Shown: positions 1 through 40,315, numbered from the stretch's first letter. The stretch: 43,159 bases of DNA from Perkinsus chesapeaki ATCC PRA-425 (GCA_013115145.1 JAAPAO010000284.1:1-43159), one strand, 5' to 3'. The notes: generated from the letters alone by a model not told the origin. Numbers and translations are program-made.

Positions 1-756
1 GATGAGTGAGCAACAGAAACCGCTGCGCGGGGCGAGCGAACACCCCTGTGGCGGACTAGTCGCACCGTGTGCAAACACACGTAGCAATTGGATTGTGCTG
101 CCGCGCCCATGGCGCGGAATATGTGCCAGTGCATGTGGACGCGTGCGTTTATAGAATCCTTCGATATATTTGCCCTAATCAACGTGCATTCATTTTCCTT
201 GAGTGCTCTAGCGTAATCAAAATGACAAGTATCAGCCTGACAACGTCTGTTGAGACGTTCCCCTCCATTCAAGTCCTAAGTTATTGATCCAACGGTAGCC
301 ATTGCGTTATATAAAACATGGTTGGGAATTGAACCACGGACCAAACGCCCGAATCCTCCAACAAGTCCTAACGCGCCTCTTCAGAATCCCAATGCCCTCC
401 TCATCATCAGTCTGTTGTTACAGAACAACTTTTATATACCGTTCATAGACGATGAGCAAACCTGACCGAATAGTTAGCATATGCGCTGTTGAGTTGGTGA
501 AAGGAAAACACTGAGATATGTTTCTGTGTTATGCCCCGCTCCCGAGGAGACTTGCCTGTGTCAGTCTAAGCCTTAGACTCTGAGGCATAACCTCGCTTAT
601 TTATGCATCATTCGGTACGTGGAGCGTTCTGGGACACTGGAAGTAGCCTGCCAACACTGTCGGGCTCCCGTTGGAGGGGACGGTCCCCTAGGGACCTCCC
701 TAAGAAGATGCTGCGACAACTTGCATCACGCAAAATTTATATGAACAATTGTATGT

Positions 757-2150: not shown

Positions 2151-3037
2151 CTACCGACTCTGTAAGCGGGTGCGTGCATTCAAAGATTTGTACCGTATTT
2201 CTTGTAGGAGTGCATCGACGGTGGCATATGCATGAATACTATCCCTGACGGGGATTTCTGCATGTACAGCAGCTGATCTAATGGGAATTGTAGATAGGAT
2301 CCATGTATAGTCGGTGAATATGACAAAGGGTGACGCTTCATTTTATCAGCCGTAGGTTGTCAAGACGACTTGTCCTCATCATTAGCTCGAATTTTCTTAT
2401 CGGCGATTCAAGCTTGTACCTTTTTGTTGAGTTTCACGTTAAGGAACACACCCGCCACAAATAGAGATATTTATACGGCATTATCAGAGGTCCAGTGTGT
2501 AATTGCAACGGAATATGCTCAACCGGTCCTGCATTCCGCGTTGACTGAGCAGCCCGCTAAGGACACCTGGGAGCACATGATAAGCCCCATGTGTCCACTC
2601 TCTACTTCACAAGAGCCCCGAAAATACGTCTTGAACCTACCAAACCCTATTGGGTTCTACACTACTCCACACCTGTAGCACAGGAAGTAGGAAACCCAGA
2701 GCAGGCCGCTCATCGAACATTAGTCGCGAAGACTCCGCTGCGCACGTTGATGCCTTAGCCGAGCGCAGTGGAGCCTGGTTATTGCTTATACGTATGTTAT
2801 GCTCATGCCTATGCATCATCCAGCGAGCAGTTTGCAACTATGTGGAGCTGCCTTGGGTATCCATGGTCGTAGCCTGCCAATAGTATGGGGTATTAGCTTG
2901 AGGAGCGATGCTATACATCGATAAGATGAGTTCGAGACAGCATTTATGCCCCTTTTTCGATGTAGCACCCGAGATCCCCTGTCGGTGTTTGTCCTTAATG
3001 CGAGGAGATCAAGAGTTCGGATACAGAGTGATCATTA

Positions 3038-3119
3038 GAGTGTTTGCCCGAGTGGTTAAGGGGGTGGACTTAAGATCCACTGGACAATGTCCGCGTGGGT
3101 TCGAACCCCACAGCACTCA
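3038..3119 (+). tRNA. tRNA-Leu(UAA)
   Basis: Cloverleaf: acceptor GAGTGTT/AGCACTC+A; D arm CCC-GAGTGGTTAA-GGG; anticodon stem GTGGA/TCCAC with loop CT-TAA-GA (TAA at 3071-3073); long variable arm GGACAATGTCC; T arm GTGGG-TTCGAAC-CCCAC. Confidence 0.95.
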
Positions 3120-5916: not shown

Positions 5917-6085
5917 TCCTCAAGACAAGCTGTAGAAGCATCCTAATTAATGAACCAAACGCCAAGCTGGAGGACATAAGATGGAAACGCGGTTGATAGA
6001 ATCAGATAGACTATCTGATGTCACTCTTATTCCAATGATAATAAGCGTCGCTGGTCGTTTGGTGTATATTAAATGGTGTGTGTTT

Positions 6086-7517
6086 TTAGCCCATACGGAC
6101 GATACCCGATGCTATTAGCTTCTCCAAGGCACTAGCAATCTTAGGATCCTTCATGTACTGAAATACAACTTAATATATTCCCCGATATGACCGGCGGTCG
6201 CGGCGGCAAGGAGTATTACCTCCATAGCCTTCTGAGGGTTCTCCTGCATCTGCTGTAGCACTATGTTCATCTGAGGATCCTTCAATATCCTCTGAACCTC
6301 AGGATCCTGCATAGCATGCCTCACAGTCTCCGGATCAGGTGCTCCCTTGGATCGGGCCTGTTCGTTCACCTACGAGCAGTGACACTATAGAGCTTTTAGA
6401 GAGTATACTTCCTACCTTGGCAATAACAGCGGCCTTACCGTCGAGGAGCTCCTTATGGTTGGGATCAATCTCGAGGCCCCTAATACGGAAATTTAAGAGC
6501 GTGACAAGTGCAAGTCAGCCCACTTCTCGTAATCTTCAAGGGCCTTCTTGTAATCCTTCATCATGAAGTGCACTGTTCCCTTACGACTGTATGCCTTCAC
6601 GAATTTGGGATCGATCTGAAGGCATCAAAGTAACCTTCCAGGTATCTTTCACGCTCCAACCTTAAGACATTCATCCAGATCCCGGAGAGCGTCGGGATAG
6701 GCCATCAACTTTGTAAGAGCTGCTGCCCGATTCGAATACAGCTTGGCATCGTTCGGGTTACCTACGACCATTCCACTATGGCTCATGGCAACTGCAAGAT
6801 CCATACGTTTGATAGCCTCATCGTATTCCTTTTTAGCTCCTGCGTAGTCTCCCTGCTTGAAGCAGTCATTACCCTTAACACGATGGATATCAGCCAGCTC
6901 GGGGTCAATGTAAGCCTAAAATCCAAACACTAGAGGGTGCACGACAGACGACACATTCGGTACTACCTCTCTATCATGCTTCTCCTTCAAGTGTTTGCAT
7001 TCATTCAAAGCAGCGCGAGTGTGACGGTTATTGTCCTCAGTAAGTGCCTTTTGATACATTTCAATGGCCTCATCGAACCTGTCCAATACACTGCAAAATA
7101 TACCCTTTAGGCTCAGTGTACTTTTGCATTCGAACGTAACAAGTGGCCATCCTAACATAAGCCTTAGCAACCTTCTCAAAGGAGGCTCCGTCCTTTAGAG
7201 CCTCATTCATCTCATACCTATAACCACATCCACAATGCATCAACCAGCGCCGTGTAGCCTACCGTTTATCAAGGGCATCCTGTAGTAACTTTACACAGTC
7301 CTCGTACTTCTCCTGCTCTACCAACACAGCGGCCTTATTGTTATAATAGACCAAGTCATTAGGCTGCAGCTCGATAGCCTTGTCGTAACATTCAATGGCC
7401 TACAACACATATCTTAACCCTAATAATGCTCCGTACAGATACCTCGTCGAATTTCCGTTGTTTATAGAGGGCGTTGCCCTTGGCCTTTTCGGCATCAGCT
7501 GCTGCGGAATCTCCCAT
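6086..7517 (-). CDS. STI1: STI1/HOP Hsp70-Hsp90 organising co-chaperone, short TPR2A-TPR2B-DP2 form
   Basis: Exons give [25 protein letters not shown]|[26 protein letters not shown]...VAKAYVRMA...[15 protein letters not shown]...[24 protein letters not shown]...[21 protein letters not shown]...[32 protein letters not shown]|[23 protein letters not shown]. Confidence 0.9.
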
Positions 7518-10329: not shown

Positions 10330-13300
10330 TATGTATGCGGACCATGAGGCCCCGGATATCTTCGTCCGCTCCCGTCCCATCTCAAAGAGTACTGTTTGCT
10401 TGCTACAGACCTGCTGCTAGTTAATGTCCCGTCATTCGCCGTCGGAGTTCCGTGCCTCTCCCAGAGGTCTAGGTACTCCTCATCGCCCGACTGCCCCACG
10501 AAGGCCACTAGCTGTCCCAATTCTGGCTGGCATCAGAAGAGCTAGAACCGTATCTCCGTCCAGGGTGATCATGGAGGCCCTTGACGATCTGCCTTTCTAT
10601 CACTGACATTCTCCTTAGCCACTTACAGCACCTTCGTCCAGGAGCACAGGGCTGTTCGGTCGATACCGCATTCCCAGGGCGCGTCTGATACAGAGGGCTG
10701 ATGAGGGGCCTGTTGGGGAGGAGGAGGCAGCAGCTAGAGAAGAGGAGCAGCGAGCAATGCAAAGGTTGAGGGAACAGGAGCGAAGGTGGGCGGAATGATG
10801 GATGGGTGGGAGGTAACGCATAGTGGTCAGGAATCGGGAGAGGTTGCTGTTGGATGAGATAAAACAAGTTATGGAGCGACTGAGGGATGTGGTGATGGAA
10901 AAGGATACTCAGATCATGAGATTAAAGGAGAGGGTAAAGGCTGTGGGTGAGGGTATAGGGACCGTGGGAGAGTGGGGTACGGAAAGTACGAGTAGAAGAA
11001 GAGTTATGTTTTACAAATATCAACATTCGAATTGGCATCACTGGCATAGCCTGCTGAGTTCCGCTCTGTGCTCAAATAGGAGGGCATGCTCGTTCACTTT
11101 TTGTTGGATTCGAAGGTAATGTTGTCCTCTTGAAATTCCAATGGCCAATTTACACCTGGGTGGATGTATGCTAGGTAGTAGTTGTTTATTAATCGGTAGT
11201 CTAGTGGAACTTTCGATATGGAATAAGCGGGGTATATACGCCAGTGATATTAGTGATAACCATGCAACAGGTTAAGTTCCTGTCACGAGAAGGGGATCTT
11301 AGGAGAGCTTATGAGAAAAGTTCACAGGATGCTAACAGAGAGTGAGCAGCCATTCAACGACTGATGTCCCTCGAATCAGCGGGCCTCCGTCAGCTGCTCA
11401 CCCGGGCGGGGGCGGATACTCGCAATGATAGTAACTCAGTGTCAATCGTGAAGGTATTATCGCGAGCACATTGCATACAGCCGCGGGAATCTAGGTCTCT
11501 CTGTATCAAACAACTAGATGCCAGGAAAACAGTGTGTCAGGGTTTACCGACTATCAGAGCAGATTGAGAAAGATGCCGTTGCCTGTGCTGGACTGCGGAG
11601 TCAAGTTGCTAGGTTACGCAGAGAGCGCGATGAAGGGAAGACAGTGGTGAGGCCACTCAGGCATTTGGGAGTGTATGGGCTGTTGTAGATTGAAAGGCTG
11701 GCAAACAGAGTGGGCGAGATGGCGATTGATGCGGGGATCGGGGTGAAGTCAACGAATAAGATTGATGCTAAAATAGGGCCTGATAGCAGAGATGAACAAG
11801 AGCATAAGAACGTGGCTACGGATGAGGAAGAGGAGCGAACGGTGCTCAAGCTAGATGCCAGGACAGGACCCGATAGCAGTCGGGGAGATGACTATAGGGG
11901 CACAGGAGTGATGGACATTATGAAGGTTCATGCTAAGACAGGACCGGACAGTGAATGTGGAGAGGTTGATGAGGACGTTGATAATAATGGTGATGATGAT
12001 ATAGATGCTTTACGTATACAAGTAAGGGGATTAGGGTATGTAGAAGAGATAGAAGATGGTGAGTAGATTAGCCGATATAAAGCAGAGTTGGAAGTGTTAC
12101 GTGAAGCCACGAAGCTGGTCGACGTTAATGTCTCGACGGAACCCGGGAAAAGTCCCCAGCTACTATCCGTTCCGGCGGCTATCAGTGAGTAGTGGGAGGG
12201 AGGGGCAGCTATCCGATAAAGTCACTTTGCGTGTCCTGATGATGCAAGTGTCACTGTCTACAGGCGCCTCCATCCATGGTAGCTCGGGAGCACCTAGCGT
12301 ATCAAGCTTTGACGAAGAGGGGGCCGATATTGAAGGGTTGCGGATGACAGTTGCTAGGCAGCAGACTATTATAGATAGTCTTGAGGAAGACCTGAGAGCG
12401 GTAGGCGATCGCCTCTAGTAGGCGGGTTTCGGCAATACATCTTGGCAAGTGCACTTCTATAGGGATATAGTACCGACATAACCTCGTAAGGTAGTAAGCA
12501 GTGGCAAGTGTTCGGTTAAGTATCCATTTGGGTGGTTATGGTACCGGGCTCGCCGGTAGGGTTTGACTCAACTCTTTAGGCCTTCCGGGAGGTATACGAT
12601 GCTACCAATGAGTTGACGAAGGAACGTGAAAAGTGTGAGAAACTCCAAGAAGGTATCGCGGTACCAGACAACTCGGAGAAGGCAGCCTTGGACGAAGTTG
12701 ACGGATTACAGAAACAAGTCCGAGATTACCGCGACGAGGTAGAATACAGTTGAGATAGAGAAGGGTCTATCAGTGAACACGAGTAATGTATTATACGTTA
12801 TCTGTTCATTTGGTAACGATGAAGCGGCCGTACAGTGGAGTCTTTGGTAGGCACAGACGTTGAAAACACATTTAGCGGAAGCTACGTCTCTGGGGTTTGT
12901 CCCTAATTCTGTTTGCCCATCGGAAGGCGAAGAGACGCTCGACTCGCTGCAGCTGAAATGCGCTCAACTTGGCGTAGGGATGCCCGATTCCTTGGAATGG
13001 TAGCTTATTACAGGCTGCAATAAAGCCACTGGAAAAGGAGCTTCAGGAGACTAGTAAACGTACATCACTTGCAAGCATCGACGCTGGTGAGAGGGTTTTC
13101 GATCCTCTCGATGAGGCATCTCGAGATGGTAAGAGCCTGGCTCATTGCTGGGGCGGTCAACTCGGCAACTTTCGACAACTCAGAGTTGGAAGACAGAGTG
13201 GCCTTTTTAACTGCAAGGTTGGATGCATCTCAGCGGAGCGAGAATAAACTGAGGAACGCTTTGGTAGATGGTGATAGTAGGATTTACTAAAGACTCTCGC

Positions 13301-27034: not shown

Positions 27035-28638
27035 CTGCTCGATTGCATGTTATTTTGGCCTTATATTGTGCATGTTTGAGTCCTGTCAAACGTACCGAGG
27101 TTGCGGAGGTTTTTCATTTGCTGACTAACACTCAACGAACTCTGGCATATCTCAAAAGCAAATAAAATTCTCAGCCTCCTACTATCACATCGCGTTTTGG
27201 CAAGATAGAGCATAGTAAATAGGAAGAACGCCGACAAGCGCTTCGACTGATACACAATAATGGAATGCTTGTGACATACAAAGTAGGTACCTTAACACTT
27301 GTTTCAGCAACCTCCAACCGAAATGCTCTTTGCCTGAGCCAAAGAGGTATCAATGCTTTTAGAGATTTCGAGCCTCTGTGATCGATGTCCAGGACTTGAT
27401 AGTACTAATCATCTCGTCGATTGTAGCCCTGAATGGAGTAAGTTTTCATGGGTCAAGAGCTTATAGTTAATCTTACCTGACATCCTCGCTCATCTGTGAT
27501 TCATCCTTAATTCAATAACAATGACTAGCTTTAGGCACCTGAGGCGATCCTTGTGAACTCTATGAGACTTCAGCTACACCTCGTATTCGCTTAGTCCGGG
27601 AATCGTGGTGTTGATCCTGCCAGCCTCCTTCCATGGATCAACTTCGCCCAACACAACGAGAATATTCGTAGCTCGGTGGAGCTCTTTTCCGCCAAATTTC
27701 TCTAATAGTTCGGCAACAGTATTTTGGATCTGAGAGGGCCGACAAGTTGTTCCTGCATCACACGCTTGCGCACTACATCAGTCTTCGATCTCAAGAATGC
27801 GTCGTGGCAAATAGACTGCTCAATATTGATAACAGCTGCATCTTGTATAAAAGGACATGAGCTTCCTGTATTGTACGAATGGAAGAGGGCCCATTGATTA
27901 CAACGTTGGAAGTCAAACAGCTTGTAGAACTCTAGATTGGTCCGTGCTTTGAGGCTAAATGAAGGTTTATTCACTGCCCTTCAAGGGACAGGCCCCGACA
28001 ATGGGGCGGCTACCTTGCGGAAATGAATGCAGAATAAGTGGACCATTGAGGCATTGTGCCCTCTGGCTGAAGAATCTTGCGGTATATCATCGTGATTTTA
28101 TCCCTTCGGAGAAAAGCAATTCATAATAATCCATATCTTTTGACTCTGTCCTCTTATCCATATCTCAAACGTAGTCGCAGATCTTTCTGATATTGCTTAG
28201 TGCCGCGTCACAGTACGGCTCGTTTCCCTGCAGTCGGGCCCTGAGTGGTTGGCGGGCAACCCTGAGAGATGACCCTCGAGCATCAACCATAACATCATTC
28301 AGATGTATCTTACCACCACCACCTAGATTTCTCGTCCTCTAGATAACCGCTTGGGAGATTATAGACTCTCTCGATATATCGTCTGCCTGCGTGCGCACAG
28401 GGGGGTGAGTCTGGCATTAATTGATTTTAAAAAACTCGTTATACCTTTCGAAGACGGGGAACAAAATGAGCTATGTCTCGCATTGATATTCGGAGGGGTT
28501 GAGGAGTTACGTTCGGGGCTTGATGCAATAGCGCAAATAGCTGAGAGTCTCAGCCTGAGACCTACCCGAGAAACTGAACGCAATAAAGATGCGGAAAGAA
28601 ATTATACAGGGACCAGTTAACCAACTACGCTGAGAGAA

Positions 28639-29412
28639 CTATGGTGATCCGCTATGTTCGAGAGTCTCCTCATAAGCCGCGCAGGCTCGTCGGGGCCTGG
28701 CCTCCTTGAACGAGTTACTAGACTCGATCTGTCGTTTAGCGTTATACATTGCTCCGATGTGCTTCATCGCATCAGAATCAGACATACACTTTACCATGCT
28801 AACAGTAGATTCTCTGTTGATCACCCCATGGAGAGACTCGATGCTCTCTTCGGTGACGGACCAGGCAGATATGCCTGCGATGTCTAACTGCCGAAGGCTA
28901 TCCAGTAGATGATGCAGAGTTACATGCAGGCTTAGTGTCAGTGGCAGACAATCCTTCGAAACGACCTCCGACAACCTGTTCAGGTGAACTTCTACTTTAT
29001 CAATTCACTTTGTGTCATCGTCTTCGTCTTCAGAGCTGTGATCAGCGTAAACCAGATGACGTATCTCTCCCCAAAGCCTAATGATTGTCGCAGTAGTTGC
29101 CCCCAAGCCAGCCGCTTCCCATAGATCCTCTGCATCAGGCTGCGCTGAGATTCTAGAAGCCAAGGTCGCGCAATCTTTGCCTGTGAGGGACACAGCTTGG
29201 ATAAACTTTCGATCCAGACTTGACGAAGATACTGGTAGAGACGTGGCAACACCATAATTCTCTTGTAGGAACTTCTGGATCTTCTGGCGGTCTTCAGGGC
29301 TCTTAGAGTATCTCCCCAGAAGTGCCTTCACAAGGTTCATACCTAGGTGTAGAACTGGGCAGGCAATAGCCAGGAATGGAGATCCTTCGAATTCATACAG
29401 GGGCTCGAACTG
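28639..29412 (-). pseudogene. Transposase C-terminal core (RAG1/Transib-like zinc-binding helical domain and catalytic Glu), one premature TGA at 29005-29007
   Basis: One continuous frame: FEPLYEFEGSPFLAIACPVLHLGMNLVKALL...SPEDRQKIQKFLQENYGV...SLTGKDCATL...DDDTK*IDKVEVHLNRLSEVVSKDCLPLTLSLHVTLHHLLDSLRQLDIAGISAWSVTEESIESLHGVINRE. Confidence 0.75.
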
Positions 29413-29591
29413 TGAAGATATTTGTGTAGACAGTATCCATTTGTGTTAGATGTCCCCTTTGCGTATGAGCTAAGATATCTAGCGCGACGCTAGTGCTGTG
29501 AATAGTTTGATACATTTTATAATTGAATAAAACTCACTAATAATTCTACTTGTGTTAACTCAATACTCAACAATCATAGTTCATCATATTA

Positions 29592-30318
29592 TCACTCCGT
29601 TCCTTTCGGCTTGCCCAATTGCTTACGGAACGCGGAGGCACACCCAGTGCTTACTTGGCCAGCCAGGTTCTCCTTCTGAGAGGCGTCTACCAGAAGAGCA
29701 TGCTTGGCTGAAACCGAGAGTTGCGAGAAACTTAGCACTCCGTCAGTCGAAGTGGGGCCACAAGAACCGAGAACCTCTTTGTCAACAAGCATTAGGACAG
29801 GCATAGTACTACTGCTACTACTGCTACCAGAACTGACACTCGGTTGACATTCGTTGCTTGTCACAGCGGCAGACTCTTTCTTTGGTCTACCGGACCGTCC
29901 TTTGCGGCGGTTGGCATTGCAGTTTTTAGCAGTCATATTATCGCAAAAGTAGCAGTCCGTCCCAGGGACGTGCAAAAGGGCCTTTTGCACCATCGCAGAA
30001 GGGCAGGGTACGCCAATTCAGTGGGGGCGTCTTCTTTATACCCAGCTTTGCTTTGCGTTCCCGAGACTGGCGAGTCTGTACACCTTCTCCGGCCCACTTC
30101 TGTATATACTTCTTGGGATCTGTTCCGAGGGAAATATCACATGCTGAGCATATCTGGCATGGAGCGTTCTTTAGAGCTAGCATACCGGCTGTCTCATCGC
30201 CCCATACCGTCTCGATCTTAGCACGAACCGATGGTCTACTGATGGGGACCCCCCTATTATTGTGCTGGAATCCACATAAGAAGCAGAATCTGTCTTTGCA
30301 CGGGATGGCTGGCGTCAT
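29592..30318 (-). pseudogene. Transposase N-terminal Cys/His zinc-binding region (RAG1 non-core / Chapa-domain-like), frameshifted near 29990
   Basis: MTPAIPCKDRFCFLCGFQHNNRGVPISRP...NAPCQICSACDISL...NW, then, after a frame change, LLHVPGTDCYFCDNMTAKNCNANRRKGRSGRPKK. Confidence 0.7.
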
Positions 30319-32473
30319 AGTGGTTATATCGATACCAACAATACAACTAACAACAGGGATGGTCTTTGAAACACTCCTCAATACAAACTCCTCAATACAC
30401 GCACGCACGCGTGCGTGCGGACCTTGCCTCTTATGATCTGGTTGGCGTTTTGAATCTGAGCGTAGACGACGTCAACTAATGAGAGTCTCACGAACAAAAG
30501 ACGCTCTGCACTTCCACCGAGCCTCAGGTTATAAAGAGCAGCGGCTATCGCGCTGTTATACCTGATGATATACGTCGGTAAGGGACGATCTACAGTGTTG
30601 CATAATCACTCCTGAGAGTCGCATTTCAGTCCAAGTCCCGGGCAGCTCGCAACCGCCCCCACGAAAAAATCTGGGTATCTAACTCGAGCCCAAGCTGCAA
30701 GACTCTGACAGAATAGGACCAGAGATGGCCCGGACCACTGTGGACGAGTCTCACTCCATTATAGCTGCACCCAAGGAGCACGAACCGGGGAGTTTCCAGC
30801 TTATGTTCCCTAATGATATGCTCCCGGAATGTGCGCAAGTCTTCGGCAGCCTGTACAACTGTGAAGAGCCCCTTTAAGTCAGCAAGCGGTGGTGACTTGA
30901 CCGGACTCGACTCACCGTAGAATCTACAAATGGCCTCAAGCGAGTGACGACATGCAACTTCATTACCTAAGCTCAAGAGCAACTACAGTTGCCTTCAGCT
31001 CGTAAGCGATTTGGATCATATACATCCCAATCGGTTCCATCGCTCTGTGTTCCTTCTGGCCTTCCACCTTCACGAGGACAATCTGTTACACGTCGAACTA
31101 GTCACACTGTGACTGTCACAGCTGCATATGGCAGCTCACGGGCGCAAGAATGCTAAGAATGATTTACCGGAGATTCAGATTGGGGATTTTGGAGCTGATC
31201 GTCATACAAGTATCGTTGCGTGAAAGTTCCTGAACATGGAATGTCGACCCCTTGATAGAATAGCCGAATGAAACAGACCTCTATGCTTGAAGTGATCTAC
31301 AGGCTGATCGAAATCGAGCAGATTGGCGGCTGTGATCTGGTCAGAGAATGTAAGGAGCTTTAACCGGAACAATAAAAGCCGCATGACTGGGAAAGCTGAG
31401 AGTGTGAATCTTACTATTAGCCCATAAGCTGTATGACTCGCTAGTAGCGAGTCGCTAAATGCGTCACTGCCTAGTCACTACACTGCCTAGTAGGCAGGCT
31501 ATAGGTATCCTACTCTGGTTTCTATGGTCATGGTGAAAATGAAGTGAGGCGTGTAGACACGATCAAGTTCTAAGGTCAGGAATGCACCCGCTGTAGGAGT
31601 GGTTCATCCAAACACGATCTCTAGAGATTACATTATACCCCTTCTACCGTAGAGGGAGACTCTTTATGGTCTCGGGAAGAGGGTATTCATCGTCCTTGGA
31701 AACGTCAGAGTTTGAGCAATCGAGCGTTGAAGCTAATACTTGCCCAGGAAATGGATTATTTTCGAGCTAACGTAACACTGTGCTACTAACACACAGTCGA
31801 CATCATAGTCCCACTTATGAACCAGTGAAAAACTTCCTCAATAGGGATCCACCTCTGAGAGTCATGGAGCTATGTTCATCAAAGGACTACTTGTCATTAC
31901 TGCTGTTTCCGGATGACTGGATAGGTAGAGGTGACCTGCCACTTGAAGTGGTCCACTTCTAGGAGGAAGACTTGGTCTTGATGGCCTTCACTACTCTGTG
32001 TTGCCGTCTTGAGCTTGCCAAGGTGCGCATATACGGACCATACTGAGATATAATAACTCTCTCCGAGAGTAGTATAGTCATTTTAATGCATGGCTAGTGG
32101 AGTGATCATGATAGATAAAAAGTGTATCTATGTAGCTCTGAGCTAGTTGGGTTAAGTGCATACCGTAGAGATGCAATGACGTGGCGCTGAGACCAAGGAA
32201 ATGTGTGTGTGCGAGTTAATTGTCGAACGCTGAAGAAGGGTTCGTTAGACTATCCATACTATGTGTAGCTTCCGAACGATAATTATAACCCATGACGGTT
32301 TTAATTATTGCCATCATGCAATTCTATTTACTAAGATAATGCCATTTGGCTAGAGATTGAAAACTCTGGATGGTCAATATTACGTCCTAGTTATAGCGCA
32401 GTGTAAGTATTACTTACTGAGTAAAACTGACCAACTACCCATAACGCATGTGTGGCAAGTATTTAATAGAAAA

Positions 32474-34389: not shown

Positions 34390-37359
34390 TTATGCCGAGT
34401 TGGATACGGCGTCAGGCTGAGCGGCTTCATATGCCGACAAGTTCCTGACTGGGGTGAAGTAACAGAAAATGGGATAAGATAGATATAACAAACCGATGAT
34501 CCATGTCAACAGTTGTCCCAGTACAGCCACACGGTGCTTCTGAGAGCGGGGGATAGTATGGTGCATCATGATAACCTTCTCGAGACCCTGTCCGAGATGT
34601 GCAATGAAGAAGCACACACCGCAGAGGTAGAAGATAACCCACCCGAAACTGGTGAACATCTCCTTGGTCATAAGATAGAGATCCTTGAATTCGACAACCG
34701 GGCAAGAGAGATCGTCCTCGGCACAATAGAAGGGATACATCCACTTTGCACGGAATCGGTAGATAGGAGCATGAGACTCGCGCACAAACCTCAACTGGCT
34801 AAGATGCACAATGAGGAAGATCAAAAGGAAAATACCAGTAATAGGCATCCAGAGCTGATCAAGAGGCATGTGGATGTTCTTGAACTTGAACGTTCTCATA
34901 AGAGCAACAACGACATGCATCAGACCGGCAAGCAAGAGATAGATCTCGACAGGAAGCATCAAAGTACCCCACACGAACGGATGGTTAAGGAAGTAGGCAT
35001 AGGCGTTGAAATGAACGGCACCGAAGAAAAGATGGATGTTACCGAGGGCGTGAATAACGACAAAGACGCACATGAACATAGCGGGACGCGTGACACCAGT
35101 CTTATCATAAGGATGCTTGAAGTTCTTGACGGAGAAGATGGTAGCGAAGACTTCATAAAGGAACAACCACACGAAGTAGCAGAAGGCAGCGCACCACTCA
35201 TACACCGTATAGCCAACAGCAGGTCCGAGTGGACCGAACTGCTTAGCGGTGTTTCTGTCAGGACCCCACCATTGCTCTTCAGAAAGGAGAGGAGTGCTCA
35301 AATCATTGGACACTGCACCAGCAGCTGCAGAAGAACCGCCGCCCATCACAGAGTTAAGAGGACCGAGGTAATACTTCTTGCCGATGGTACTCAATGTCTT
35401 GGAATCATGAATCATGTTGAACTGAGTAGAACCATCCTTACCAGCATAGCTCATAATAGCAGCAGCTCCACCAGGATGGATCGGAGCCCAGTCGGTAAGA
35501 TCGTAGACACCATCATCGATGATCATCCAGCAATCCTTATCAGTGTTGTGCTTTGCAACCTCCTCGGCACTCAACACCTTACCACCGGCAGGAGCGGCAC
35601 CAGTAGCGGGGGCAGCGGCTGCAGCAGCAGAGGCAAGTGGTCCGAGCTCATAAGGCTTTCCGTACTTCTCCATAGTGCCAGCAGGGTGGATCATGTTCCA
35701 CTCATCAGAGGCGTCCTTACCAGCGTACTGAAGAATAACAGCCTCTCCACCAGGATGCTTCGGGAGCCAGTCAGTGACGTTGTAAACCATGCCGTTGACG
35801 ATAATCCAGCAGTCATCCTTGGTAGTGTGCTTAGCAACTTCCTCCTCAGTGTAGCCTGCAGGTGCAGGAGCAGAAACTGAACCACCGGATCCAAGAGGAC
35901 CAAGTTCATAAGGCTTGCCGTACTTCTCCATAGTGCCCTTAGGATGGATGGCATTCCAATCATCAGAGGCATCCTGACCAGCGTGCTGAAGGATAACATC
36001 AGGTCCACCGGGATGCTTCGGGAGCCACTCAGTAACATTGTACACCATGCCGTTGACAACAATCCAGCAGTCATCCTTAGTAGTGTGCTTAGCAACCTCG
36101 TCCATAGTGAGAGCCGGAGTACTGGGCTGAGCCTCGCCACCAATAGTAGAGCCGAGGGCACCAAGCTCATAAGGCTTGCCGTATTTCTCCATAGTGTCCT
36201 TAGGATGGATGGCATTCCAGTCCGTAGAGGCATCCTGACCAGCGTGCTGAAGAATGATCTCAGGTCCACCGGGATGCTTCGGGAGCCACTCAGTGACATT
36301 ATAAACCATGCCATTGACAACAATCCAGCAGTCGTCCTTAGTAGTGTGCTTAGCGACCTCGTCCATAGTAAGCTTCACACCACCAGTGCTTGAACTACCC
36401 GCCATGGCGTCACCGAGCTTACCAACAATGTATTTGCCACCGTACTGCTGAAGAACCTCGGGACGATGGATGGAGTTGAAGGTGTTGGAAGCATCTTTAC
36501 CAGCAAACTTGACAATGGCAGCTTCTCCACCAGGGTGCTCGGGCAGGAACTTGGTAACGTTCATAACATAGCCGTTGACAACAACCCAGCAGTCATCCTT
36601 GGTGTTATGCTTAGCAACCTCCTCCATAGTGAGACGCTTAGCATTAGCAGCAGGGGCCGCGGACTTCTTGTTCTTACTCTTCAAGTCGCCAATGAGATAC
36701 TTGGCACCGTCTTTATCGAGAATGGAGTGCTCGTGGCATGTATTGAACTCCAAAGAGCAATCGGTACCAGCGAAGGCAGTGAGGGCCATGATTCCACCAG
36801 GATGCTCCTTCTCGAAGCTAGTGACATCATAAACCTTACCATCAATAACCAGCCAGCAATCATCATCAGTATTGTGTTGAGCGACCTCATCCATGGAGAT
36901 AGCGTCCACAAGACTTCCAACAAGATATTGCTGATAGTCCTTCAGCATGTCCTTCTCGTGAACGGTGTTGAACTCAAGTGAACAATCTTTACCAGCAAAG
37001 GCACTAAGAGCCAGAGAGCCACCAGGATGCTCGTTTTGGTATTTAGTAACATCATAGACCTGGCCGTTAATGATGACCCAGCAGTCATCATCGTTATCGT
37101 GCTTGGCAACCTGCTCTTTGGTGAAACCCTGACAGAGCTTACCAACGATAAGATCCTTATGCTGCTGTATGAGCTCCTTCTCGTGGACTGTGTTGTATTC
37201 AAGGGAACAGTCAGTACCGGCGAAGGCGTTGAGGGCCAAGGCGCCTCCAGGATGCTCATTCTGGTACTTGGTCACGTCGAGGATGTCACCGTTGATGATA
37301 AGCCAACAGTCTTTGTCAGTGTTGTGTTTTGCAACTTGCTCTTTAGTATAGGAACCCAT
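34390..37359 (-). CDS. 8 x cytochrome b5 domains fused to an SdhC/FrdC(b558)-type di-heme membrane domain, intronless, 989 aa
   Basis: Eight repeats of EVAKH...DCW.....VY.VT.....HPGG.......AG.D....(F/W/Y)N..H, each with both heme His. The C-terminus has about 6 TM helices with four His (VIHALGN, LMHVVVA, IVHLSQ, IAHLGQG). The ATG is at 37359; the ORF track start is an upstream GTG. Confidence 0.9.
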   Translation of the reverse strand: MGSYTKEQVAKHNTDKDCWLIINGDILDVTKYQNEHPGGALALNAFAGTDCSLEYNTVHEKELIQQHKDLIVGKLCQGFTKEQVAKHDNDDDCWVIINGQVYDVTKYQNEHPGGSLALSAFAGKDCSLEFNTVHEKDMLKDYQQYLVGSLVDAISMDEVAQHNTDDDCWLVIDGKVYDVTSFEKEHPGGIMALTAFAGTDCSLEFNTCHEHSILDKDGAKYLIGDLKSKNKKSAAPAANAKRLTMEEVAKHNTKDDCWVVVNGYVMNVTKFLPEHPGGEAAIVKFAGKDASNTFNSIHRPEVLQQYGGKYIVGKLGDAMAGSSSTGGVKLTMDEVAKHTTKDDCWIVVNGMVYNVTEWLPKHPGGPEIILQHAGQDASTDWNAIHPKDTMEKYGKPYELGALGSTIGGEAQPSTPALTMDEVAKHTTKDDCWIVVNGMVYNVTEWLPKHPGGPDVILQHAGQDASDDWNAIHPKGTMEKYGKPYELGPLGSGGSVSAPAPAGYTEEEVAKHTTKDDCWIIVNGMVYNVTDWLPKHPGGEAVILQYAGKDASDEWNMIHPAGTMEKYGKPYELGPLASAAAAAAPATGAAPAGGKVLSAEEVAKHNTDKDCWMIIDDGVYDLTDWAPIHPGGAAAIMSYAGKDGSTQFNMIHDSKTLSTIGKKYYLGPLNSVMGGGSSAAAGAVSNDLSTPLLSEEQWWGPDRNTAKQFGPLGPAVGYTVYEWCAAFCYFVWLFLYEVFATIFSVKNFKHPYDKTGVTRPAMFMCVFVVIHALGNIHLFFGAVHFNAYAYFLNHPFVWGTLMLPVEIYLLLAGLMHVVVALMRTFKFKNIHMPLDQLWMPITGIFLLIFLIVHLSQLRFVRESHAPIYRFRAKWMYPFYCAEDDLSCPVVEFKDLYLMTKEMFTSFGWVIFYLCGVCFFIAHLGQGLEKVIMMHHTIPRSQKHRVAVLGQLLTWIIGLLYLSYPIFCYFTPVRNLSAYEAAQPDAVSNSA

Positions 37360-37558
37360 TCTTAAAATGGAGGACCGAAAGGAACCTATGAAACTAATAA
37401 CACAGATGAGAGACACCCCAGCACGATGCCTAGCTAGGCCACGCTAAGCTTTTGACACAAAAACCCCGTCTATTTGAGAATCTTCTCACAATTTTCCCAA
37501 AGCCGGTGCAAGCGGTTACGCCACGAAGATACCGATAAGTTCCCCCGAAACATATCCT

Positions 37559-37867
37559 ATGCTAGTGGTCTCTATGGCATGTGTTAACGTTGCCTGTACC
37601 GAGGACGCTAAGCACGCTAAAAGGCCCCCTCACGGCAAAATGAGCATTCTTGAAGTCCAATTCAAGCCCTCCACACTTCCTAATGCGAGCATGTACATCA
37701 ATGTACGATCAAAGAGCGATGGAAGTACCTATATAAGTTTTACGGTAGCTCACAGTGCTGATAACCTTCGATTTCCCGACTCGAGGGCATTTGCACGCGT
37801 GCGCAAGGAGACAAATAACACAATGTTCAGCAAACACAACTTGACCTCGCGGCTTGTCTCCATTTAA
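37559..37867 (+). CDS. Small hypothetical ORF between the two b5 genes
   Basis: 102-aa ATG-initiated ORF with a mildly hydrophobic N-terminus; no family recognised. Confidence 0.2.
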   Translation: MLVVSMACVNVACTEDAKHAKRPPHGKMSILEVQFKPSTLPNASMYINVRSKSDGSTYISFTVAHSADNLRFPDSRAFARVRKETNNTMFSKHNLTSRLVSI

Positions 37868-38083
37868 GTCGTTTCCGATGGGCTGGCCACTACTTGAACT
37901 CAACATAGAGCATCTTTTCACTAACACACTTTTCAAAAAGTCAGCAGCGACTGCGTGATTCCCTATCAAAAATGCCAGTCGTCATGAGTTGATCGATAAC
38001 GAGCTTGGCCTAGGACAGTATTCGCGTCAACTTGCTAAATAGGGAATTGTCGGTCGCTGCATATGCAAACAACAATAATAGAA

Positions 38084-40315
38084 TCAGGGGCTCTTGTGGG
38101 GGTGGGGCTGCTGAGCCTGGTATGCATCCCAGTCCCGTATGGGGCACAAGTAGCAGTAAACGGGGAATGATAGATAACAGAGCCCGATAAATATAATAAT
38201 AGCCTCCGCCAAGGAAATAACGCTCGCCTTCCGGCTTCGGGGGATCAGAGAGTGAGATGTGATGATCTTGCGAATGCCCTCTTTTCCATGTGATATGAAA
38301 AAGATAACTCCAATCAAGTAGAAGGCACACCATCCAAGGTTGGAGAATAGCTCCATCTCCATTCTATATAGATCCTTGAAATGCACCACCTCACATGAAG
38401 TATCATCTTTTTCACAGAAGAACGGATACATCCATTTACTTCTGAAGTAGTACTTGGGCGCAGCGTCCTCGCTCACCAGCCTAAACTGGGTCAAATGGAC
38501 AACGATGAATGCCAGCAGGAATACACCCGAGATAGCCATCCATAGCTGATCAACACCCATAGAGATCTTCTTGAACTTATACGTTCTAACACATGCCACA
38601 ACAACGTGCATCAACCCAGCAAAAAGCAGGTAGAGCTCGACTGGCAGCATAAGCTTCCCCCATGGCACAGGGTGGTTTAGGAAGTAACCATAGGAGTTGA
38701 AGTGATCAGGGCCAGCGAAGATATGAAGGTTTCCAAGACCGTGGATCGTGACGAAGAATATCATAAAAAGTGCTGCTCTAGTGAGACCAGACTTGTCGTG
38801 AAGCACTTTGAAATTCTTAGCAGTAAAGACAGTAGCACCGATTTCATAACCAAGCATGAGGATAAAGTAGGCCAAAGCACAGGTATACCTCACAGAGAAC
38901 GTCGTTATTGATGGACCCAGCGGGCCGTACTCTGCTGCAGTGTTGCGCTCTTCGCTCCACCAGTGCTTACTGGCCAACGATGACTTCTCCAATAACGGTT
39001 GGGCCAAACTGTTGCCGATAGACGCAGCAGCCGGGACCGAACCCAGATCCCCGACAAAGTAAGTCTTGCCATGATTCTCCAACGTTCCTTCTGGATGGAT
39101 CATATTGAACTGTTCGGTAGCGTCCTTCCCAGCATAGGCCATAATAGCGGCAACACCACCAGGATGTAGAGGAAGCCATTTGGTGACATCATAAACCTTC
39201 CCGTTTATGATAACCCAGCAATCATCTTCCGAAGTATGCTTAGCCACCTCGCTCTCATCGAGCACCCCAGCTCCACCGTTAGCGCCGCCCATCATAGAGC
39301 CAAGCTCGGCTACTTCGTACTTTTTCCCGTACTTCTCCATAGTATCAGCCGGATGAATCATATTCCACTGCTCGCTGGCGTCCTTACCAGCATAAGCCAT
39401 AATAGCAGCTTCCCCACCCGGGTGGACTGCTAAGAACTCGGTGACATTGTAAACCATATTATTAACAACAATCCAGCAGTCGTCCTTGGTGTTATGCTTG
39501 GCCACTTCATCCAGCGTCAATGCATTACCGCCTTTGCTGGCCGGTGCTGCTGCTGCACCAATCTTCCCAATAATGTATTTACCACCATATTTCTGCAGCA
39601 CTTCCGGTTGATGTATCATGTTCCATTCCTCAGATGCATCCTTGCCAGCATACTGCATGATAGCAGCCTCACCGCCGGGATGCTCGGAGAGGAAGGCCGT
39701 TACGTTGAGGACAAAGTCGTTAACCACAACCCAACAGTCGCTCTTGCTGGTATGTTTGCCAACCTCACTCATCGACAGGCCACCACCGCCAGCGGCAATC
39801 GAGGTCGACCTTCGGCTCTTACGACGCTGTTTCTTCTGGACCATTACCGGCCCTAGAATGTACTGGCCAGCTTCCTCCTCAAGAAGGGACTTAGCGTGAC
39901 ATGTATTGTATTCTAGAGAGCAATCGGTGCCCCCAAAGGAAGTGAGAGCTATAGCTCCACCTGGATGATCATGTTGATATTTTGTTACATCTACCACCAT
40001 GCCGTTGATAACAACCCAGCAGTCCTCAGGCTCACGGTGCTTCTCGACCTCGGACATAGGTATACCTTCAGATAGAGTACCAATAATAAGGTCTTCAAAC
40101 TTATCCATAAGCTCCTTATCATGCACCGTATTGAACTCTAGAGAGCAGTCTGTGCCAGCAAATGCCGTAATTGACAAAGGGCCTCCTGGATGGTTTTGAA
40201 GGTACTTGGTGCAGTCGATAACATTGCCGTTGAGGACTATCCAGCAATCATCAGGACGATTATGCTTGGCCACCTGCTGAATGGTATATACCTTCTGGTC
40301 AGGTTGCTGCTGCAT
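38084..40315 (-). CDS. 5 x cytochrome b5 domains fused to the same SdhC/FrdC(b558)-type membrane domain, intronless, 743 aa
   Basis: Five HPGG...N..H b5 repeats. The membrane domain has VTIHGLGN, LMHVVVA, VVHLTQF and ISHGKEG and is colinear with the paralogue at 34390-37359. Confidence 0.9.
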   Translation of the reverse strand: MQQQPDQKVYTIQQVAKHNRPDDCWIVLNGNVIDCTKYLQNHPGGPLSITAFAGTDCSLEFNTVHDKELMDKFEDLIIGTLSEGIPMSEVEKHREPEDCWVVINGMVVDVTKYQHDHPGGAIALTSFGGTDCSLEYNTCHAKSLLEEEAGQYILGPVMVQKKQRRKSRRSTSIAAGGGGLSMSEVGKHTSKSDCWVVVNDFVLNVTAFLSEHPGGEAAIMQYAGKDASEEWNMIHQPEVLQKYGGKYIIGKIGAAAAPASKGGNALTLDEVAKHNTKDDCWIVVNNMVYNVTEFLAVHPGGEAAIMAYAGKDASEQWNMIHPADTMEKYGKKYEVAELGSMMGGANGGAGVLDESEVAKHTSEDDCWVIINGKVYDVTKWLPLHPGGVAAIMAYAGKDATEQFNMIHPEGTLENHGKTYFVGDLGSVPAAASIGNSLAQPLLEKSSLASKHWWSEERNTAAEYGPLGPSITTFSVRYTCALAYFILMLGYEIGATVFTAKNFKVLHDKSGLTRAALFMIFFVTIHGLGNLHIFAGPDHFNSYGYFLNHPVPWGKLMLPVELYLLFAGLMHVVVACVRTYKFKKISMGVDQLWMAISGVFLLAFIVVHLTQFRLVSEDAAPKYYFRSKWMYPFFCEKDDTSCEVVHFKDLYRMEMELFSNLGWCAFYLIGVIFFISHGKEGIRKIITSHSLIPRSRKASVISLAEAIIIFIGLCYLSFPVYCYLCPIRDWDAYQAQQPHPHKSP

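Follow-up and report, generated by a model that had tools for sequence, protein, structure and literature searches.

The CMCT clade of transposons unites EnSpm/CACTA, Mirage, Chapaev and Transib with Plavaka, ESTA and Lanisha (PMC12730594), and target duplications of 2-5 bp have been described for its EnSpm/Mirage/Chapaev/Transib group (PMC12730594; bioRxiv 10.64898/2026.08.26.747230). We have analysed 43,159 nucleotides of one strand of genomic DNA from the alveolate protist and shellfish parasite Perkinsus chesapeaki ATCC PRA-425 (GCA_013115145.1, JAAPAO010000284.1:1-43159; this whole stretch is called the window below), in which one of two tandem Peptidase_S28 genes carries an insert of 2.0 kb. 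The insert is very probably a dead, non-autonomous copy of a cut-and-paste transposon, and the Perkinsus family to which it belongs would represent a divergent Chapaev-like lineage within the EnSpm/Mirage/Chapaev/Transib group, which includes RAG1. A preliminary description of the window had taken the insert to be a transposon relic in which a RAG1-like N-terminal zinc domain is combined with a RAG1/Transib-type core outside the animals.

Chapaev and Chapaev3 elements have lancelet, sea anemone, Hydra, Aplysia, mosquito and nematodes as hosts, and the N-terminal zinc domain (NZD) of RAG1 has, to our knowledge, been followed back to date only to RAG1-like proteins and to Chapaev transposases of animals. 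According to a 2026 preprint, Chapaev is the only lineage that has consistently retained the NZD. In mouse RAG1 this domain holds two zincs, one of which is bound at ZFa by C110, C113, C175 and C178 and the other at ZFb by H102 together with H206, C210 and C213, and an identical 1+3 ligand scheme is present in type I Chapa domains (bioRxiv 10.64898/2026.01.24.700457).

The two tandem gene copies, both of the Peptidase_S28 type, are located at approximately 21.5-25.5 kb and 26.7-31.2 kb of the window. In repeat families D4, D5 and D13 the two copies are offset by 3775-3779 bp (up to 28303), and in D3, D6 and D8 by 5776-5778 bp (from 30465 on); the downstream copy therefore contains about 2.0 kb of extra sequence. 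In a pairwise alignment, the homology between the paralogues stops at 28387 and resumes at 30428, and offsets and alignment thus agree on the insertion of about 2 kb, absent from the paralogous gene, that had been pointed out at first reading. The insert occupies 28396-30411, and it is found in the downstream copy only, with no counterpart in the paralogue. Since both junctions are crossed without differences by contigs of two independent samples, the insert is real and not an assembly artefact; no contig skipping it, which would represent an empty allele, was seen among the contigs from the read data. The public gene model P0008 (window 26.7-31.4 kb) splices transposon pieces onto Peptidase_S28 exons, and this model should be regarded as an erroneous annotation of a protease gene that has been disrupted.

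Translation of the insert gave four coding pieces on the minus strand, which are broken by one frameshift, unrelated DNA and one stop. All motifs quoted in the preliminary description are present on this strand: CFLCG..HNNRGVPI..PCQICSAC in 30429-29941, TDCYFC..GRPKK in another frame in 30017-29595, PVLHLGMNLV..LTGKDCATL in 29445-29008, and LHVTLHH..SVTEESIESLH in 29004-28642. Only the letters HVPG, which had been read immediately before TDCYFC, have to be withdrawn, since they result from 19 bp that are inserted in this copy alone; intact relatives have FCDG-x-DCYFC at that site.

The window pieces show 67-94% identity to proteins of P. olseni and P. chesapeaki. With a clean four-sequence chain alignment of natural fragments (A4) as the query, a HMMER search of 1.84 billion proteins yielded 16 proteins at E < 0.001, nearly all from these two species, plus four distant ones from other assemblies, and a homologue search restricted by length returned Perkinsus fragments only. 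The family has so far been found mainly in P. olseni and P. chesapeaki. Its full-length representative is P0006 from P. olseni, a protein of 727 amino acids with both catalytic Asp residues, i.e., a copy of the kind for which a search of related genomes had been recommended. P0006 is encoded by the one long open reading frame (ORF) of a 2452-bp P. olseni contig (L003), which is a whole element with 18-bp inverted repeats. A second element, in P. chesapeaki (L004, 916-3561), has inverted repeats of 143 bp that are 98.6% identical and an ORF broken once, and distant elements with inverted repeats of 59 and 138 bp were found in two ENA eukaryote contigs (L006 and L007); relatives of the family lie in the ENA assemblies ERZ25069837 and ERZ25766962. 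Intact relatives are 2.45-2.65 kb in length, with a single intron-less ORF of about 727 amino acids and inverted repeats of 18-143 bp. This transposase ORF is the only one held by the full-length elements, in accordance with the earlier remark that no RAG2-like ORF is visible.

The termini are 5'-CAC...GTG-3' in all elements except one end of a P. olseni element, which reads TAC. The terminus is CACGGTAGGG in L004, CACGTCCGG in L007, CACGAGGG/CACAGGGG in L006 and C/TACTTGC in L003, and in the window copy and a longer P. chesapeaki copy (L001) the inverted repeat starts with CACAGGGG. These ends have the form 5'-CA...TG-3' of the CMCT clade, and CAC...GTG termini, like the single ORF without a RAG2-like partner, are features in common with Chapaev. 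The long inverted repeats (59-143 bp) set the family apart from Chapaev, as does its alveolate protist host.

The N-terminal zinc domain of P0006 has the ligands C7, then C12xxC15...C57xxC60, and then C106 and C114xxC117, which gives the interleaved 1+[2..2]+3 layout of the RAG1 NZD and the Chapa domain. Its local motifs CxxCG, P-S-x-I-C-x-x-C and W...C/H...CxxC run parallel to the published Chapa alignment (PMC4411706), and the layout also agrees with the ligand scheme known from NMR. The ligands at ZFb are all Cys in Perkinsus, whereas His is found in most Chapa/NZD domains; the distant relative in L007 retains the His ligands as H-x4-CxxCG and W-x3-H-x4-CxxC. For residues 1-140, the language-model features lie beside RAG1_imp_bd clusters with a score of 0.90 (193/256 features), and the predicted structure, with template modelling scores (TM) of 0.49-0.58, lies near RAG1 N-terminal fragments (TM by query 0.53-0.56), ZAD domains being further off. 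These neighbours are in line with what the preprint on the domain itself reports (bioRxiv 10.64898/2026.01.24.700457). The zinc domain is followed by an AT-hook (GRPKK), and there is no RING finger. At the level of ligand pattern and model only, the domain is thus assignable to the RAG1-NZD/Chapa type, which is the domain of Chapaev and also a feature that the family would share with RAG1.

The catalytic residues of the P0006 core are D343, D407 and E659, with E658 adjacent to the last. D343 stands in the conserved family block G-D-S-G-G-G, and the block G-D-x-K-x6-G-x5-C-x-x-C carries D407, C422 and C425, so placed that C422xxC425 begins 15 residues after the second Asp. Further conserved motifs are P-x-L-H and T-G-K-D, and H633-x4-H638 (with H637 also) is followed 20 residues on by T-E-E-x-I-E-S containing E658/E659. 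The alignment columns for D, D, CxxC, H(4)H and finally E, which are those of the CMCT clade, have been conserved in the copies from Perkinsus as well as in three distant relatives. This D..D..CxxC..H-x4-H..E arrangement is the RAG1/Transib arrangement, with the full order D..D-x-K..CxxC..xxLH..H-x4-H-x20-E in common. An Asp-Asp-Glu core containing both C(2)C and H(3-4)H, preceded by a Chapa-type two-zinc domain, is at the same time the organization of Chapaev. When the family profile was compared with a genuine Transib, two collinear local alignments were obtained, one covering exactly the D-x-K..CxxC block and the other the H(4)H..E block; H(4)H lies 220 residues from the second Asp in the family versus 223 in the Transib, and the top score or the collinear pair was reached in 0/80 shuffles. 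Apart from these weak profile matches at two motif blocks, the RAG1/Transib sequence models (PF12940 and related ones) and solved chains gave no match at E up to 10.

A structural model of the core was made with AlphaFold2 from the cropped core of 14 family sequences without templates, and it reached a predicted local distance difference test (pLDDT) score of 74 and a predicted TM score (pTM) of 0.74; for the whole protein with 8 sequences, pLDDT was 44 and only weak RAG1 matches were obtained. The core model adopts the RAG1-type catalytic fold, i.e., an RNase H fold with a ZnC2/ZnH2 insertion. In the Foldseek comparison with the PDB, the top 47 matches are all RAG1, BbRAGL or HzTransib, with E values from 2.8e-9 to 3e-5 and a best probability of 1.00. 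With VIA-align, the model (residues 1-398) is superposed on RAG1 501-982 at Z 18.9 over 342 residues; the corresponding Z values are 17.4 with HzTransib, 14.1 with the transposase of the P element and roughly 8 with Hermes. The likeness to the Transib, RAG1 and RAG1L structures (6PQN, 4WWX/6XNX and 6B40) extends from the pre-RNase H part past E962, with Z 15-19 over 310-350 residues. The nearest core models in the ESM Atlas are unnamed cnidarian proteins of about 700 amino acids (TM 0.72) and DUF1280 (TM 0.65 over 328 residues), and DUF1280 clusters near the family by language-model features too (score 0.87). In Pfam, Chapaev transposases are represented by DUF1280 (PMC3985635), and these nearest structural neighbours would be a further point of agreement with Chapaev.

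Judging from fold, profile blocks and ligand layout, the preliminary description was right in recognizing a relic of a transposon with a RAG1-like zinc domain and a RAG1/Transib-type core in a non-animal host. Its broader comparison with RAG1, Transib and Chapaev needs qualification: the likeness of the modelled core to RAG1/Transib is at the level of fold and motif only, the nearest neighbours of the family are Chapaev-like rather than RAG1 or Transib, and both catalytic Asp residues have been lost from the window copy.

On the assumption of a CAC terminus, the target-site duplication of L004 is 7 bp (CGCGCCG); L007 has CGAGTG, which is 6 bp, and L006 likewise has 6 bp, one of them mismatched; the lengths come from these three complete copies only, and a terminus moved by one base changes the length by two. 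In the window, the flanks share up to 8 bp, the octamer TGCGTGCG being read directly at 28388-28395 on the left and again at 30412-30419. The duplication of this copy is likely to be the last 7 bp of the octamer, GCGTGCG, with CT before it. Flanks beside the CAC terminus often consist of GCG plus four nucleotides, as in GCGTGCG after CT in the window and in GCGTTCG and GCGCACA of other copies (reads at 28393-28400).

Several points weigh against the placement of the family in a Chapaev-like lineage of this group. The apparent duplications of 6-7 bp in the three complete copies exceed the 2-5 bp of the group and the 2-4 bp of CMC elements. With hmmscan, 8 family members were compared with Pfam RAG1, DUF1280 and Transposase_21 at E values up to 10, and none gave a match; single-sequence searches of Pfam and PDB with the four window pieces and with P0001, P0005, P0006, P0007 and P0013 gave noise only, the family profile gave no match among PDB sequences, and no sequence method ties the family to a named one. 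The zinc-domain assignment comes from ligand pattern and from language-model and predicted-structure neighbours, which provide no E-value. Because we know of no solved EnSpm or Chapaev structure, RAG1 as the best PDB match cannot separate Chapaev from Transib. The placement is our reading of motifs, termini, fold and zinc domain, and the hairpin mechanism and zinc-domain role proposed below are likewise what we infer. Since the family has the motifs and termini of the group together with a Chapa-type domain, while it is too far from DUF1280 and Pfam RAG1 for detection by sequence and seems to differ in duplication length, we use the term divergent Chapaev-like lineage and have not filed the family as a member of either Chapaev or Transib.

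It is improbable, in our estimation, that the family consists instead of canonical Transib or RAG-like elements, i.e., close kin of the direct ancestor of RAG1 rather than Chapaev-like ones. Among solved structures, RAG1 and HzTransib fit best, the terminus reads CACAGGG/CACGGTA and is thus similar to the CACAGTG heptamer, and the distance of 252 residues from the second Asp to the Glu in P0006 is near that of RAG1, but the genuine Transib that served as a control (locus L007) matches HzTransib at 6e-18 and Pfam RAG1 at 5e-7, and the Perkinsus family, which lies below sequence detection by Pfam and PDB, matches neither. The cnidarian and DUF1280 clusters are structurally closer to the family (TM 0.65-0.72 versus about 0.5), and a Chapa/NZD domain is absent from canonical Transibs. 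The first and second Asp of P0006 are 64 residues apart, not about 108, and the 6-7 bp duplications differ from the 5-bp GC-rich ones of Transib and RAG1. Unlike RAG1, moreover, the family is devoid of a RING finger and a RAG2-like gene, and its long repeats are symmetric rather than a 12/23 pair. The contig of the control carries this genuine Transib transposase fragment at 11407-12627, 4 kb from the distant relative of the Perkinsus family.

Membership in the Dada superfamily, which is known from Perkinsus marinus and from animals, is less probable still. The genus, the intron-less genes in Perkinsus and the 6-7 bp duplications, often with GCG after CT (CT/GCGTGCG; GCGTTCG and GCGCACA), are all reminiscent of Dada and its targets (PMC3706591). 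Dada elements, however, are 4.7-11 kb in length, have no terminal inverted repeats, insert into small-RNA genes (tRNA and snRNA), and encode a DxxH motif and a C-terminal CCHC finger (PMC3706591), whereas the smaller Perkinsus elements carry both CxxC/H(4)H and inverted repeats (18-143 bp), and the window copy sits within a gene for a protease. In the Dada proteins of P. marinus (Dataset S1), the catalytic blocks are different and show DxQRK, YxDxxCC and LDxMH and none of the motifs of the family, and the fold of the core matches RAG1/Transib at Z 17-19, far above the value of about 8 for hAT. We have rejected Dada membership because of the absence of inverted repeats in Dada, its different catalytic blocks and its small-RNA gene targets. 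The least credible explanation is that the stretch is host coding sequence, namely protease exons as spliced in the public model P0008, because it is absent from the paralogue and broken by a frameshift and a stop, its repeat end at 28396 adjoins many different flanks at raised depth, and homologous elements with inverted repeats and target duplications are present at unrelated loci of two species, P. chesapeaki and P. olseni. The inserted sequence is a repeated one.

The divergent Chapaev-like family is represented in the window by a heavily damaged copy. On its minus strand, the 3' terminal inverted repeat (122 bp, 28396-28517) has the terminus CACAGGGGGGTGAG and contains an A/T-rich block and the motif CAAAATGAGCTATGT. 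This repeat reappears inverted at the 5' end of L001 (3921-4028), whose remainder is 94-98% identical to the window copy, and therefore 28396-28517 is a terminal inverted repeat. The reads show several distinct flanks joined to position 28396, and over the inverted repeat the depth is 7-18 times that of the flanks. A 23-bp block beginning with CAAAATGAGCTATGT is found at 28458-28480 and, with 91% identity, at 980-1002 and 3475-3497 of L004. Two Perkinsus subfamilies that are otherwise unlike each other thus have this block in common in their inverted repeats. It is a candidate transposase-binding site. A reading of the repeat as resembling a recombination signal sequence, with a heptamer, a 23-bp spacer and an A-rich nonamer, was set aside as a remark only, since A/T-rich subterminal DNA is common.

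The C-terminal transposase piece (28642-29004, minus strand) includes LHVTLHH as its H(3-4)H motif, WSVTEESIESLH as the block of the catalytic Glu, and RPRR as a basic tail; it was aligned by tblastn to residues 465-717 of P0006 with 51% identity, and its motif columns are invariant across the family alignment. An in-frame stop follows within this C-terminal half at 29005-29007 (minus strand), where relatives have W. The adjoining piece, recognized by translation and homology (29008-29445, minus strand), contains PVLHLGMNLV, at a D/CxxH-like position, and LTGKDCATL. Unrelated filler DNA of about 183 bp (29411-29594) stands in for residues 225-464, which include D343, D407 and CxxC, and the corresponding part of L001 consists of about 600 bp that code for transposase. 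The filler part 29411-29572 is a separate high-copy repeat, with a depth up to about 40 times that of the flanks in one run; it gave no match among the other loci compared and is unrelated to the element. The joint 29410>29594 is present in other copies according to the read data.

On the N-terminal side, the piece at 29595-30017 (minus strand) corresponds to residues 112-224 of P0006 and comprises DCYFC with the last zinc ligands, RSGRPKK as the AT-hook, a linker rich in Ser, and the start of the pre-catalytic region. The private insertion of about 19 bp (29963-29981, minus strand; position from the read data) causes a frameshift inside the zinc domain; these 19 bp at 29962 are absent from other copies, and intact relatives are in frame there. 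The Chapa/NZD-like zinc domain itself (29989-30318, minus strand) begins with Met and contains PC, CFLCG, ICSAC and FCDG, and tblastn aligned it to residues 1-107 of P0006 with 54% identity. Upstream of it is a truncated 5' leader (30319-30411, minus strand), which, relative to L001, is short of the 5' inverted repeat and of about 205 bp: the homology with L001 ends at 30387, and L001 continues for a further 205 bp including the repeat. When mapped on P0006, the window copy has kept residues 1-107, 112-224 and 465-717 and has lost 225-464. The copy is dead; no transposase can be encoded, and mobilisation is no longer possible. L001 itself is flanked by reverse-transcriptase-like and integrase-like ORFs (2293-3033 and 6353-7176, judged by eye), and it is truncated on its 3' side at 5947, in all probability by a further insertion.

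At the truncated junction is a perfect palindrome of 20 bp, CGCACGCACG/CGTGCGTGCG (30400-30419), whose right arm ends in the flank octamer and which contains an inverted copy of this octamer. The palindrome is also found in independent contigs, and it is the longest perfect one in the window; arms of 10 nucleotides were reached in 4/100 shuffles. Opening and repair of a hairpin may have left this palindrome as a footprint, and one conjecture is a failed one-ended excision that was repaired after the hairpin had been opened, although the fit to such a model is inexact. This account stays a conjecture because of two extra central CG pairs and because the arms are not a simple P-nucleotide copy of the 7- or 8-bp duplication.

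For the family in general, the zinc domain and the AT-hook would probably bind the A/T-rich subterminal part of the repeat and the shared CAAAATGAGCTATGT motif. By analogy with RAG and Transib, the core would probably nick the DNA at the CAC end and free the element via a hairpin on the flanking DNA, and integration through a staggered cut would probably produce the 6-7 bp duplication, often starting with GCG. The history of the window copy began with an insertion into the body of the downstream copy of the duplicated Peptidase_S28 gene. Its 5' repeat and about 205 bp were lost later, possibly in a failed one-ended excision, and the middle third of the transposase gene was also lost, with the frameshift and the stop being gained.

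Elsewhere in the window, a tRNA-Leu(TAA) gene is located at 3038-3119, and an 86% similar copy at 757-844 was not called as a tRNA. Two large genes with 8 and 5 cytochrome b5 domains occupy 34390-40315.

The window copy is merely a relic, and the type of element is a known one; what is unusual is the host. The duplications of 6-7 bp, if confirmed in more copies, would be a real difference that is new for the group. A bolder interpretation, which we regard as doubtful though worth stating, is that the Perkinsus family and its few relatives form a deep separate branch of RAG1/Transib/Chapaev, in which the NZD/Chapa domain is joined to a RAG1-like core outside the animals. Such a lineage would differ in integration geometry, as seen in the 6-7 bp duplications, and the fusion of zinc domain and core would then predate Metazoa, with transfer between molluscan hosts and their parasite as the alternative. 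A protist family having both the zinc domain and a RAG1-like core widens the host range of this architecture and bears on the question of when the two parts were joined, and the apparently intact 727-amino-acid copy of P. olseni provides a small element that is amenable to biochemical testing.

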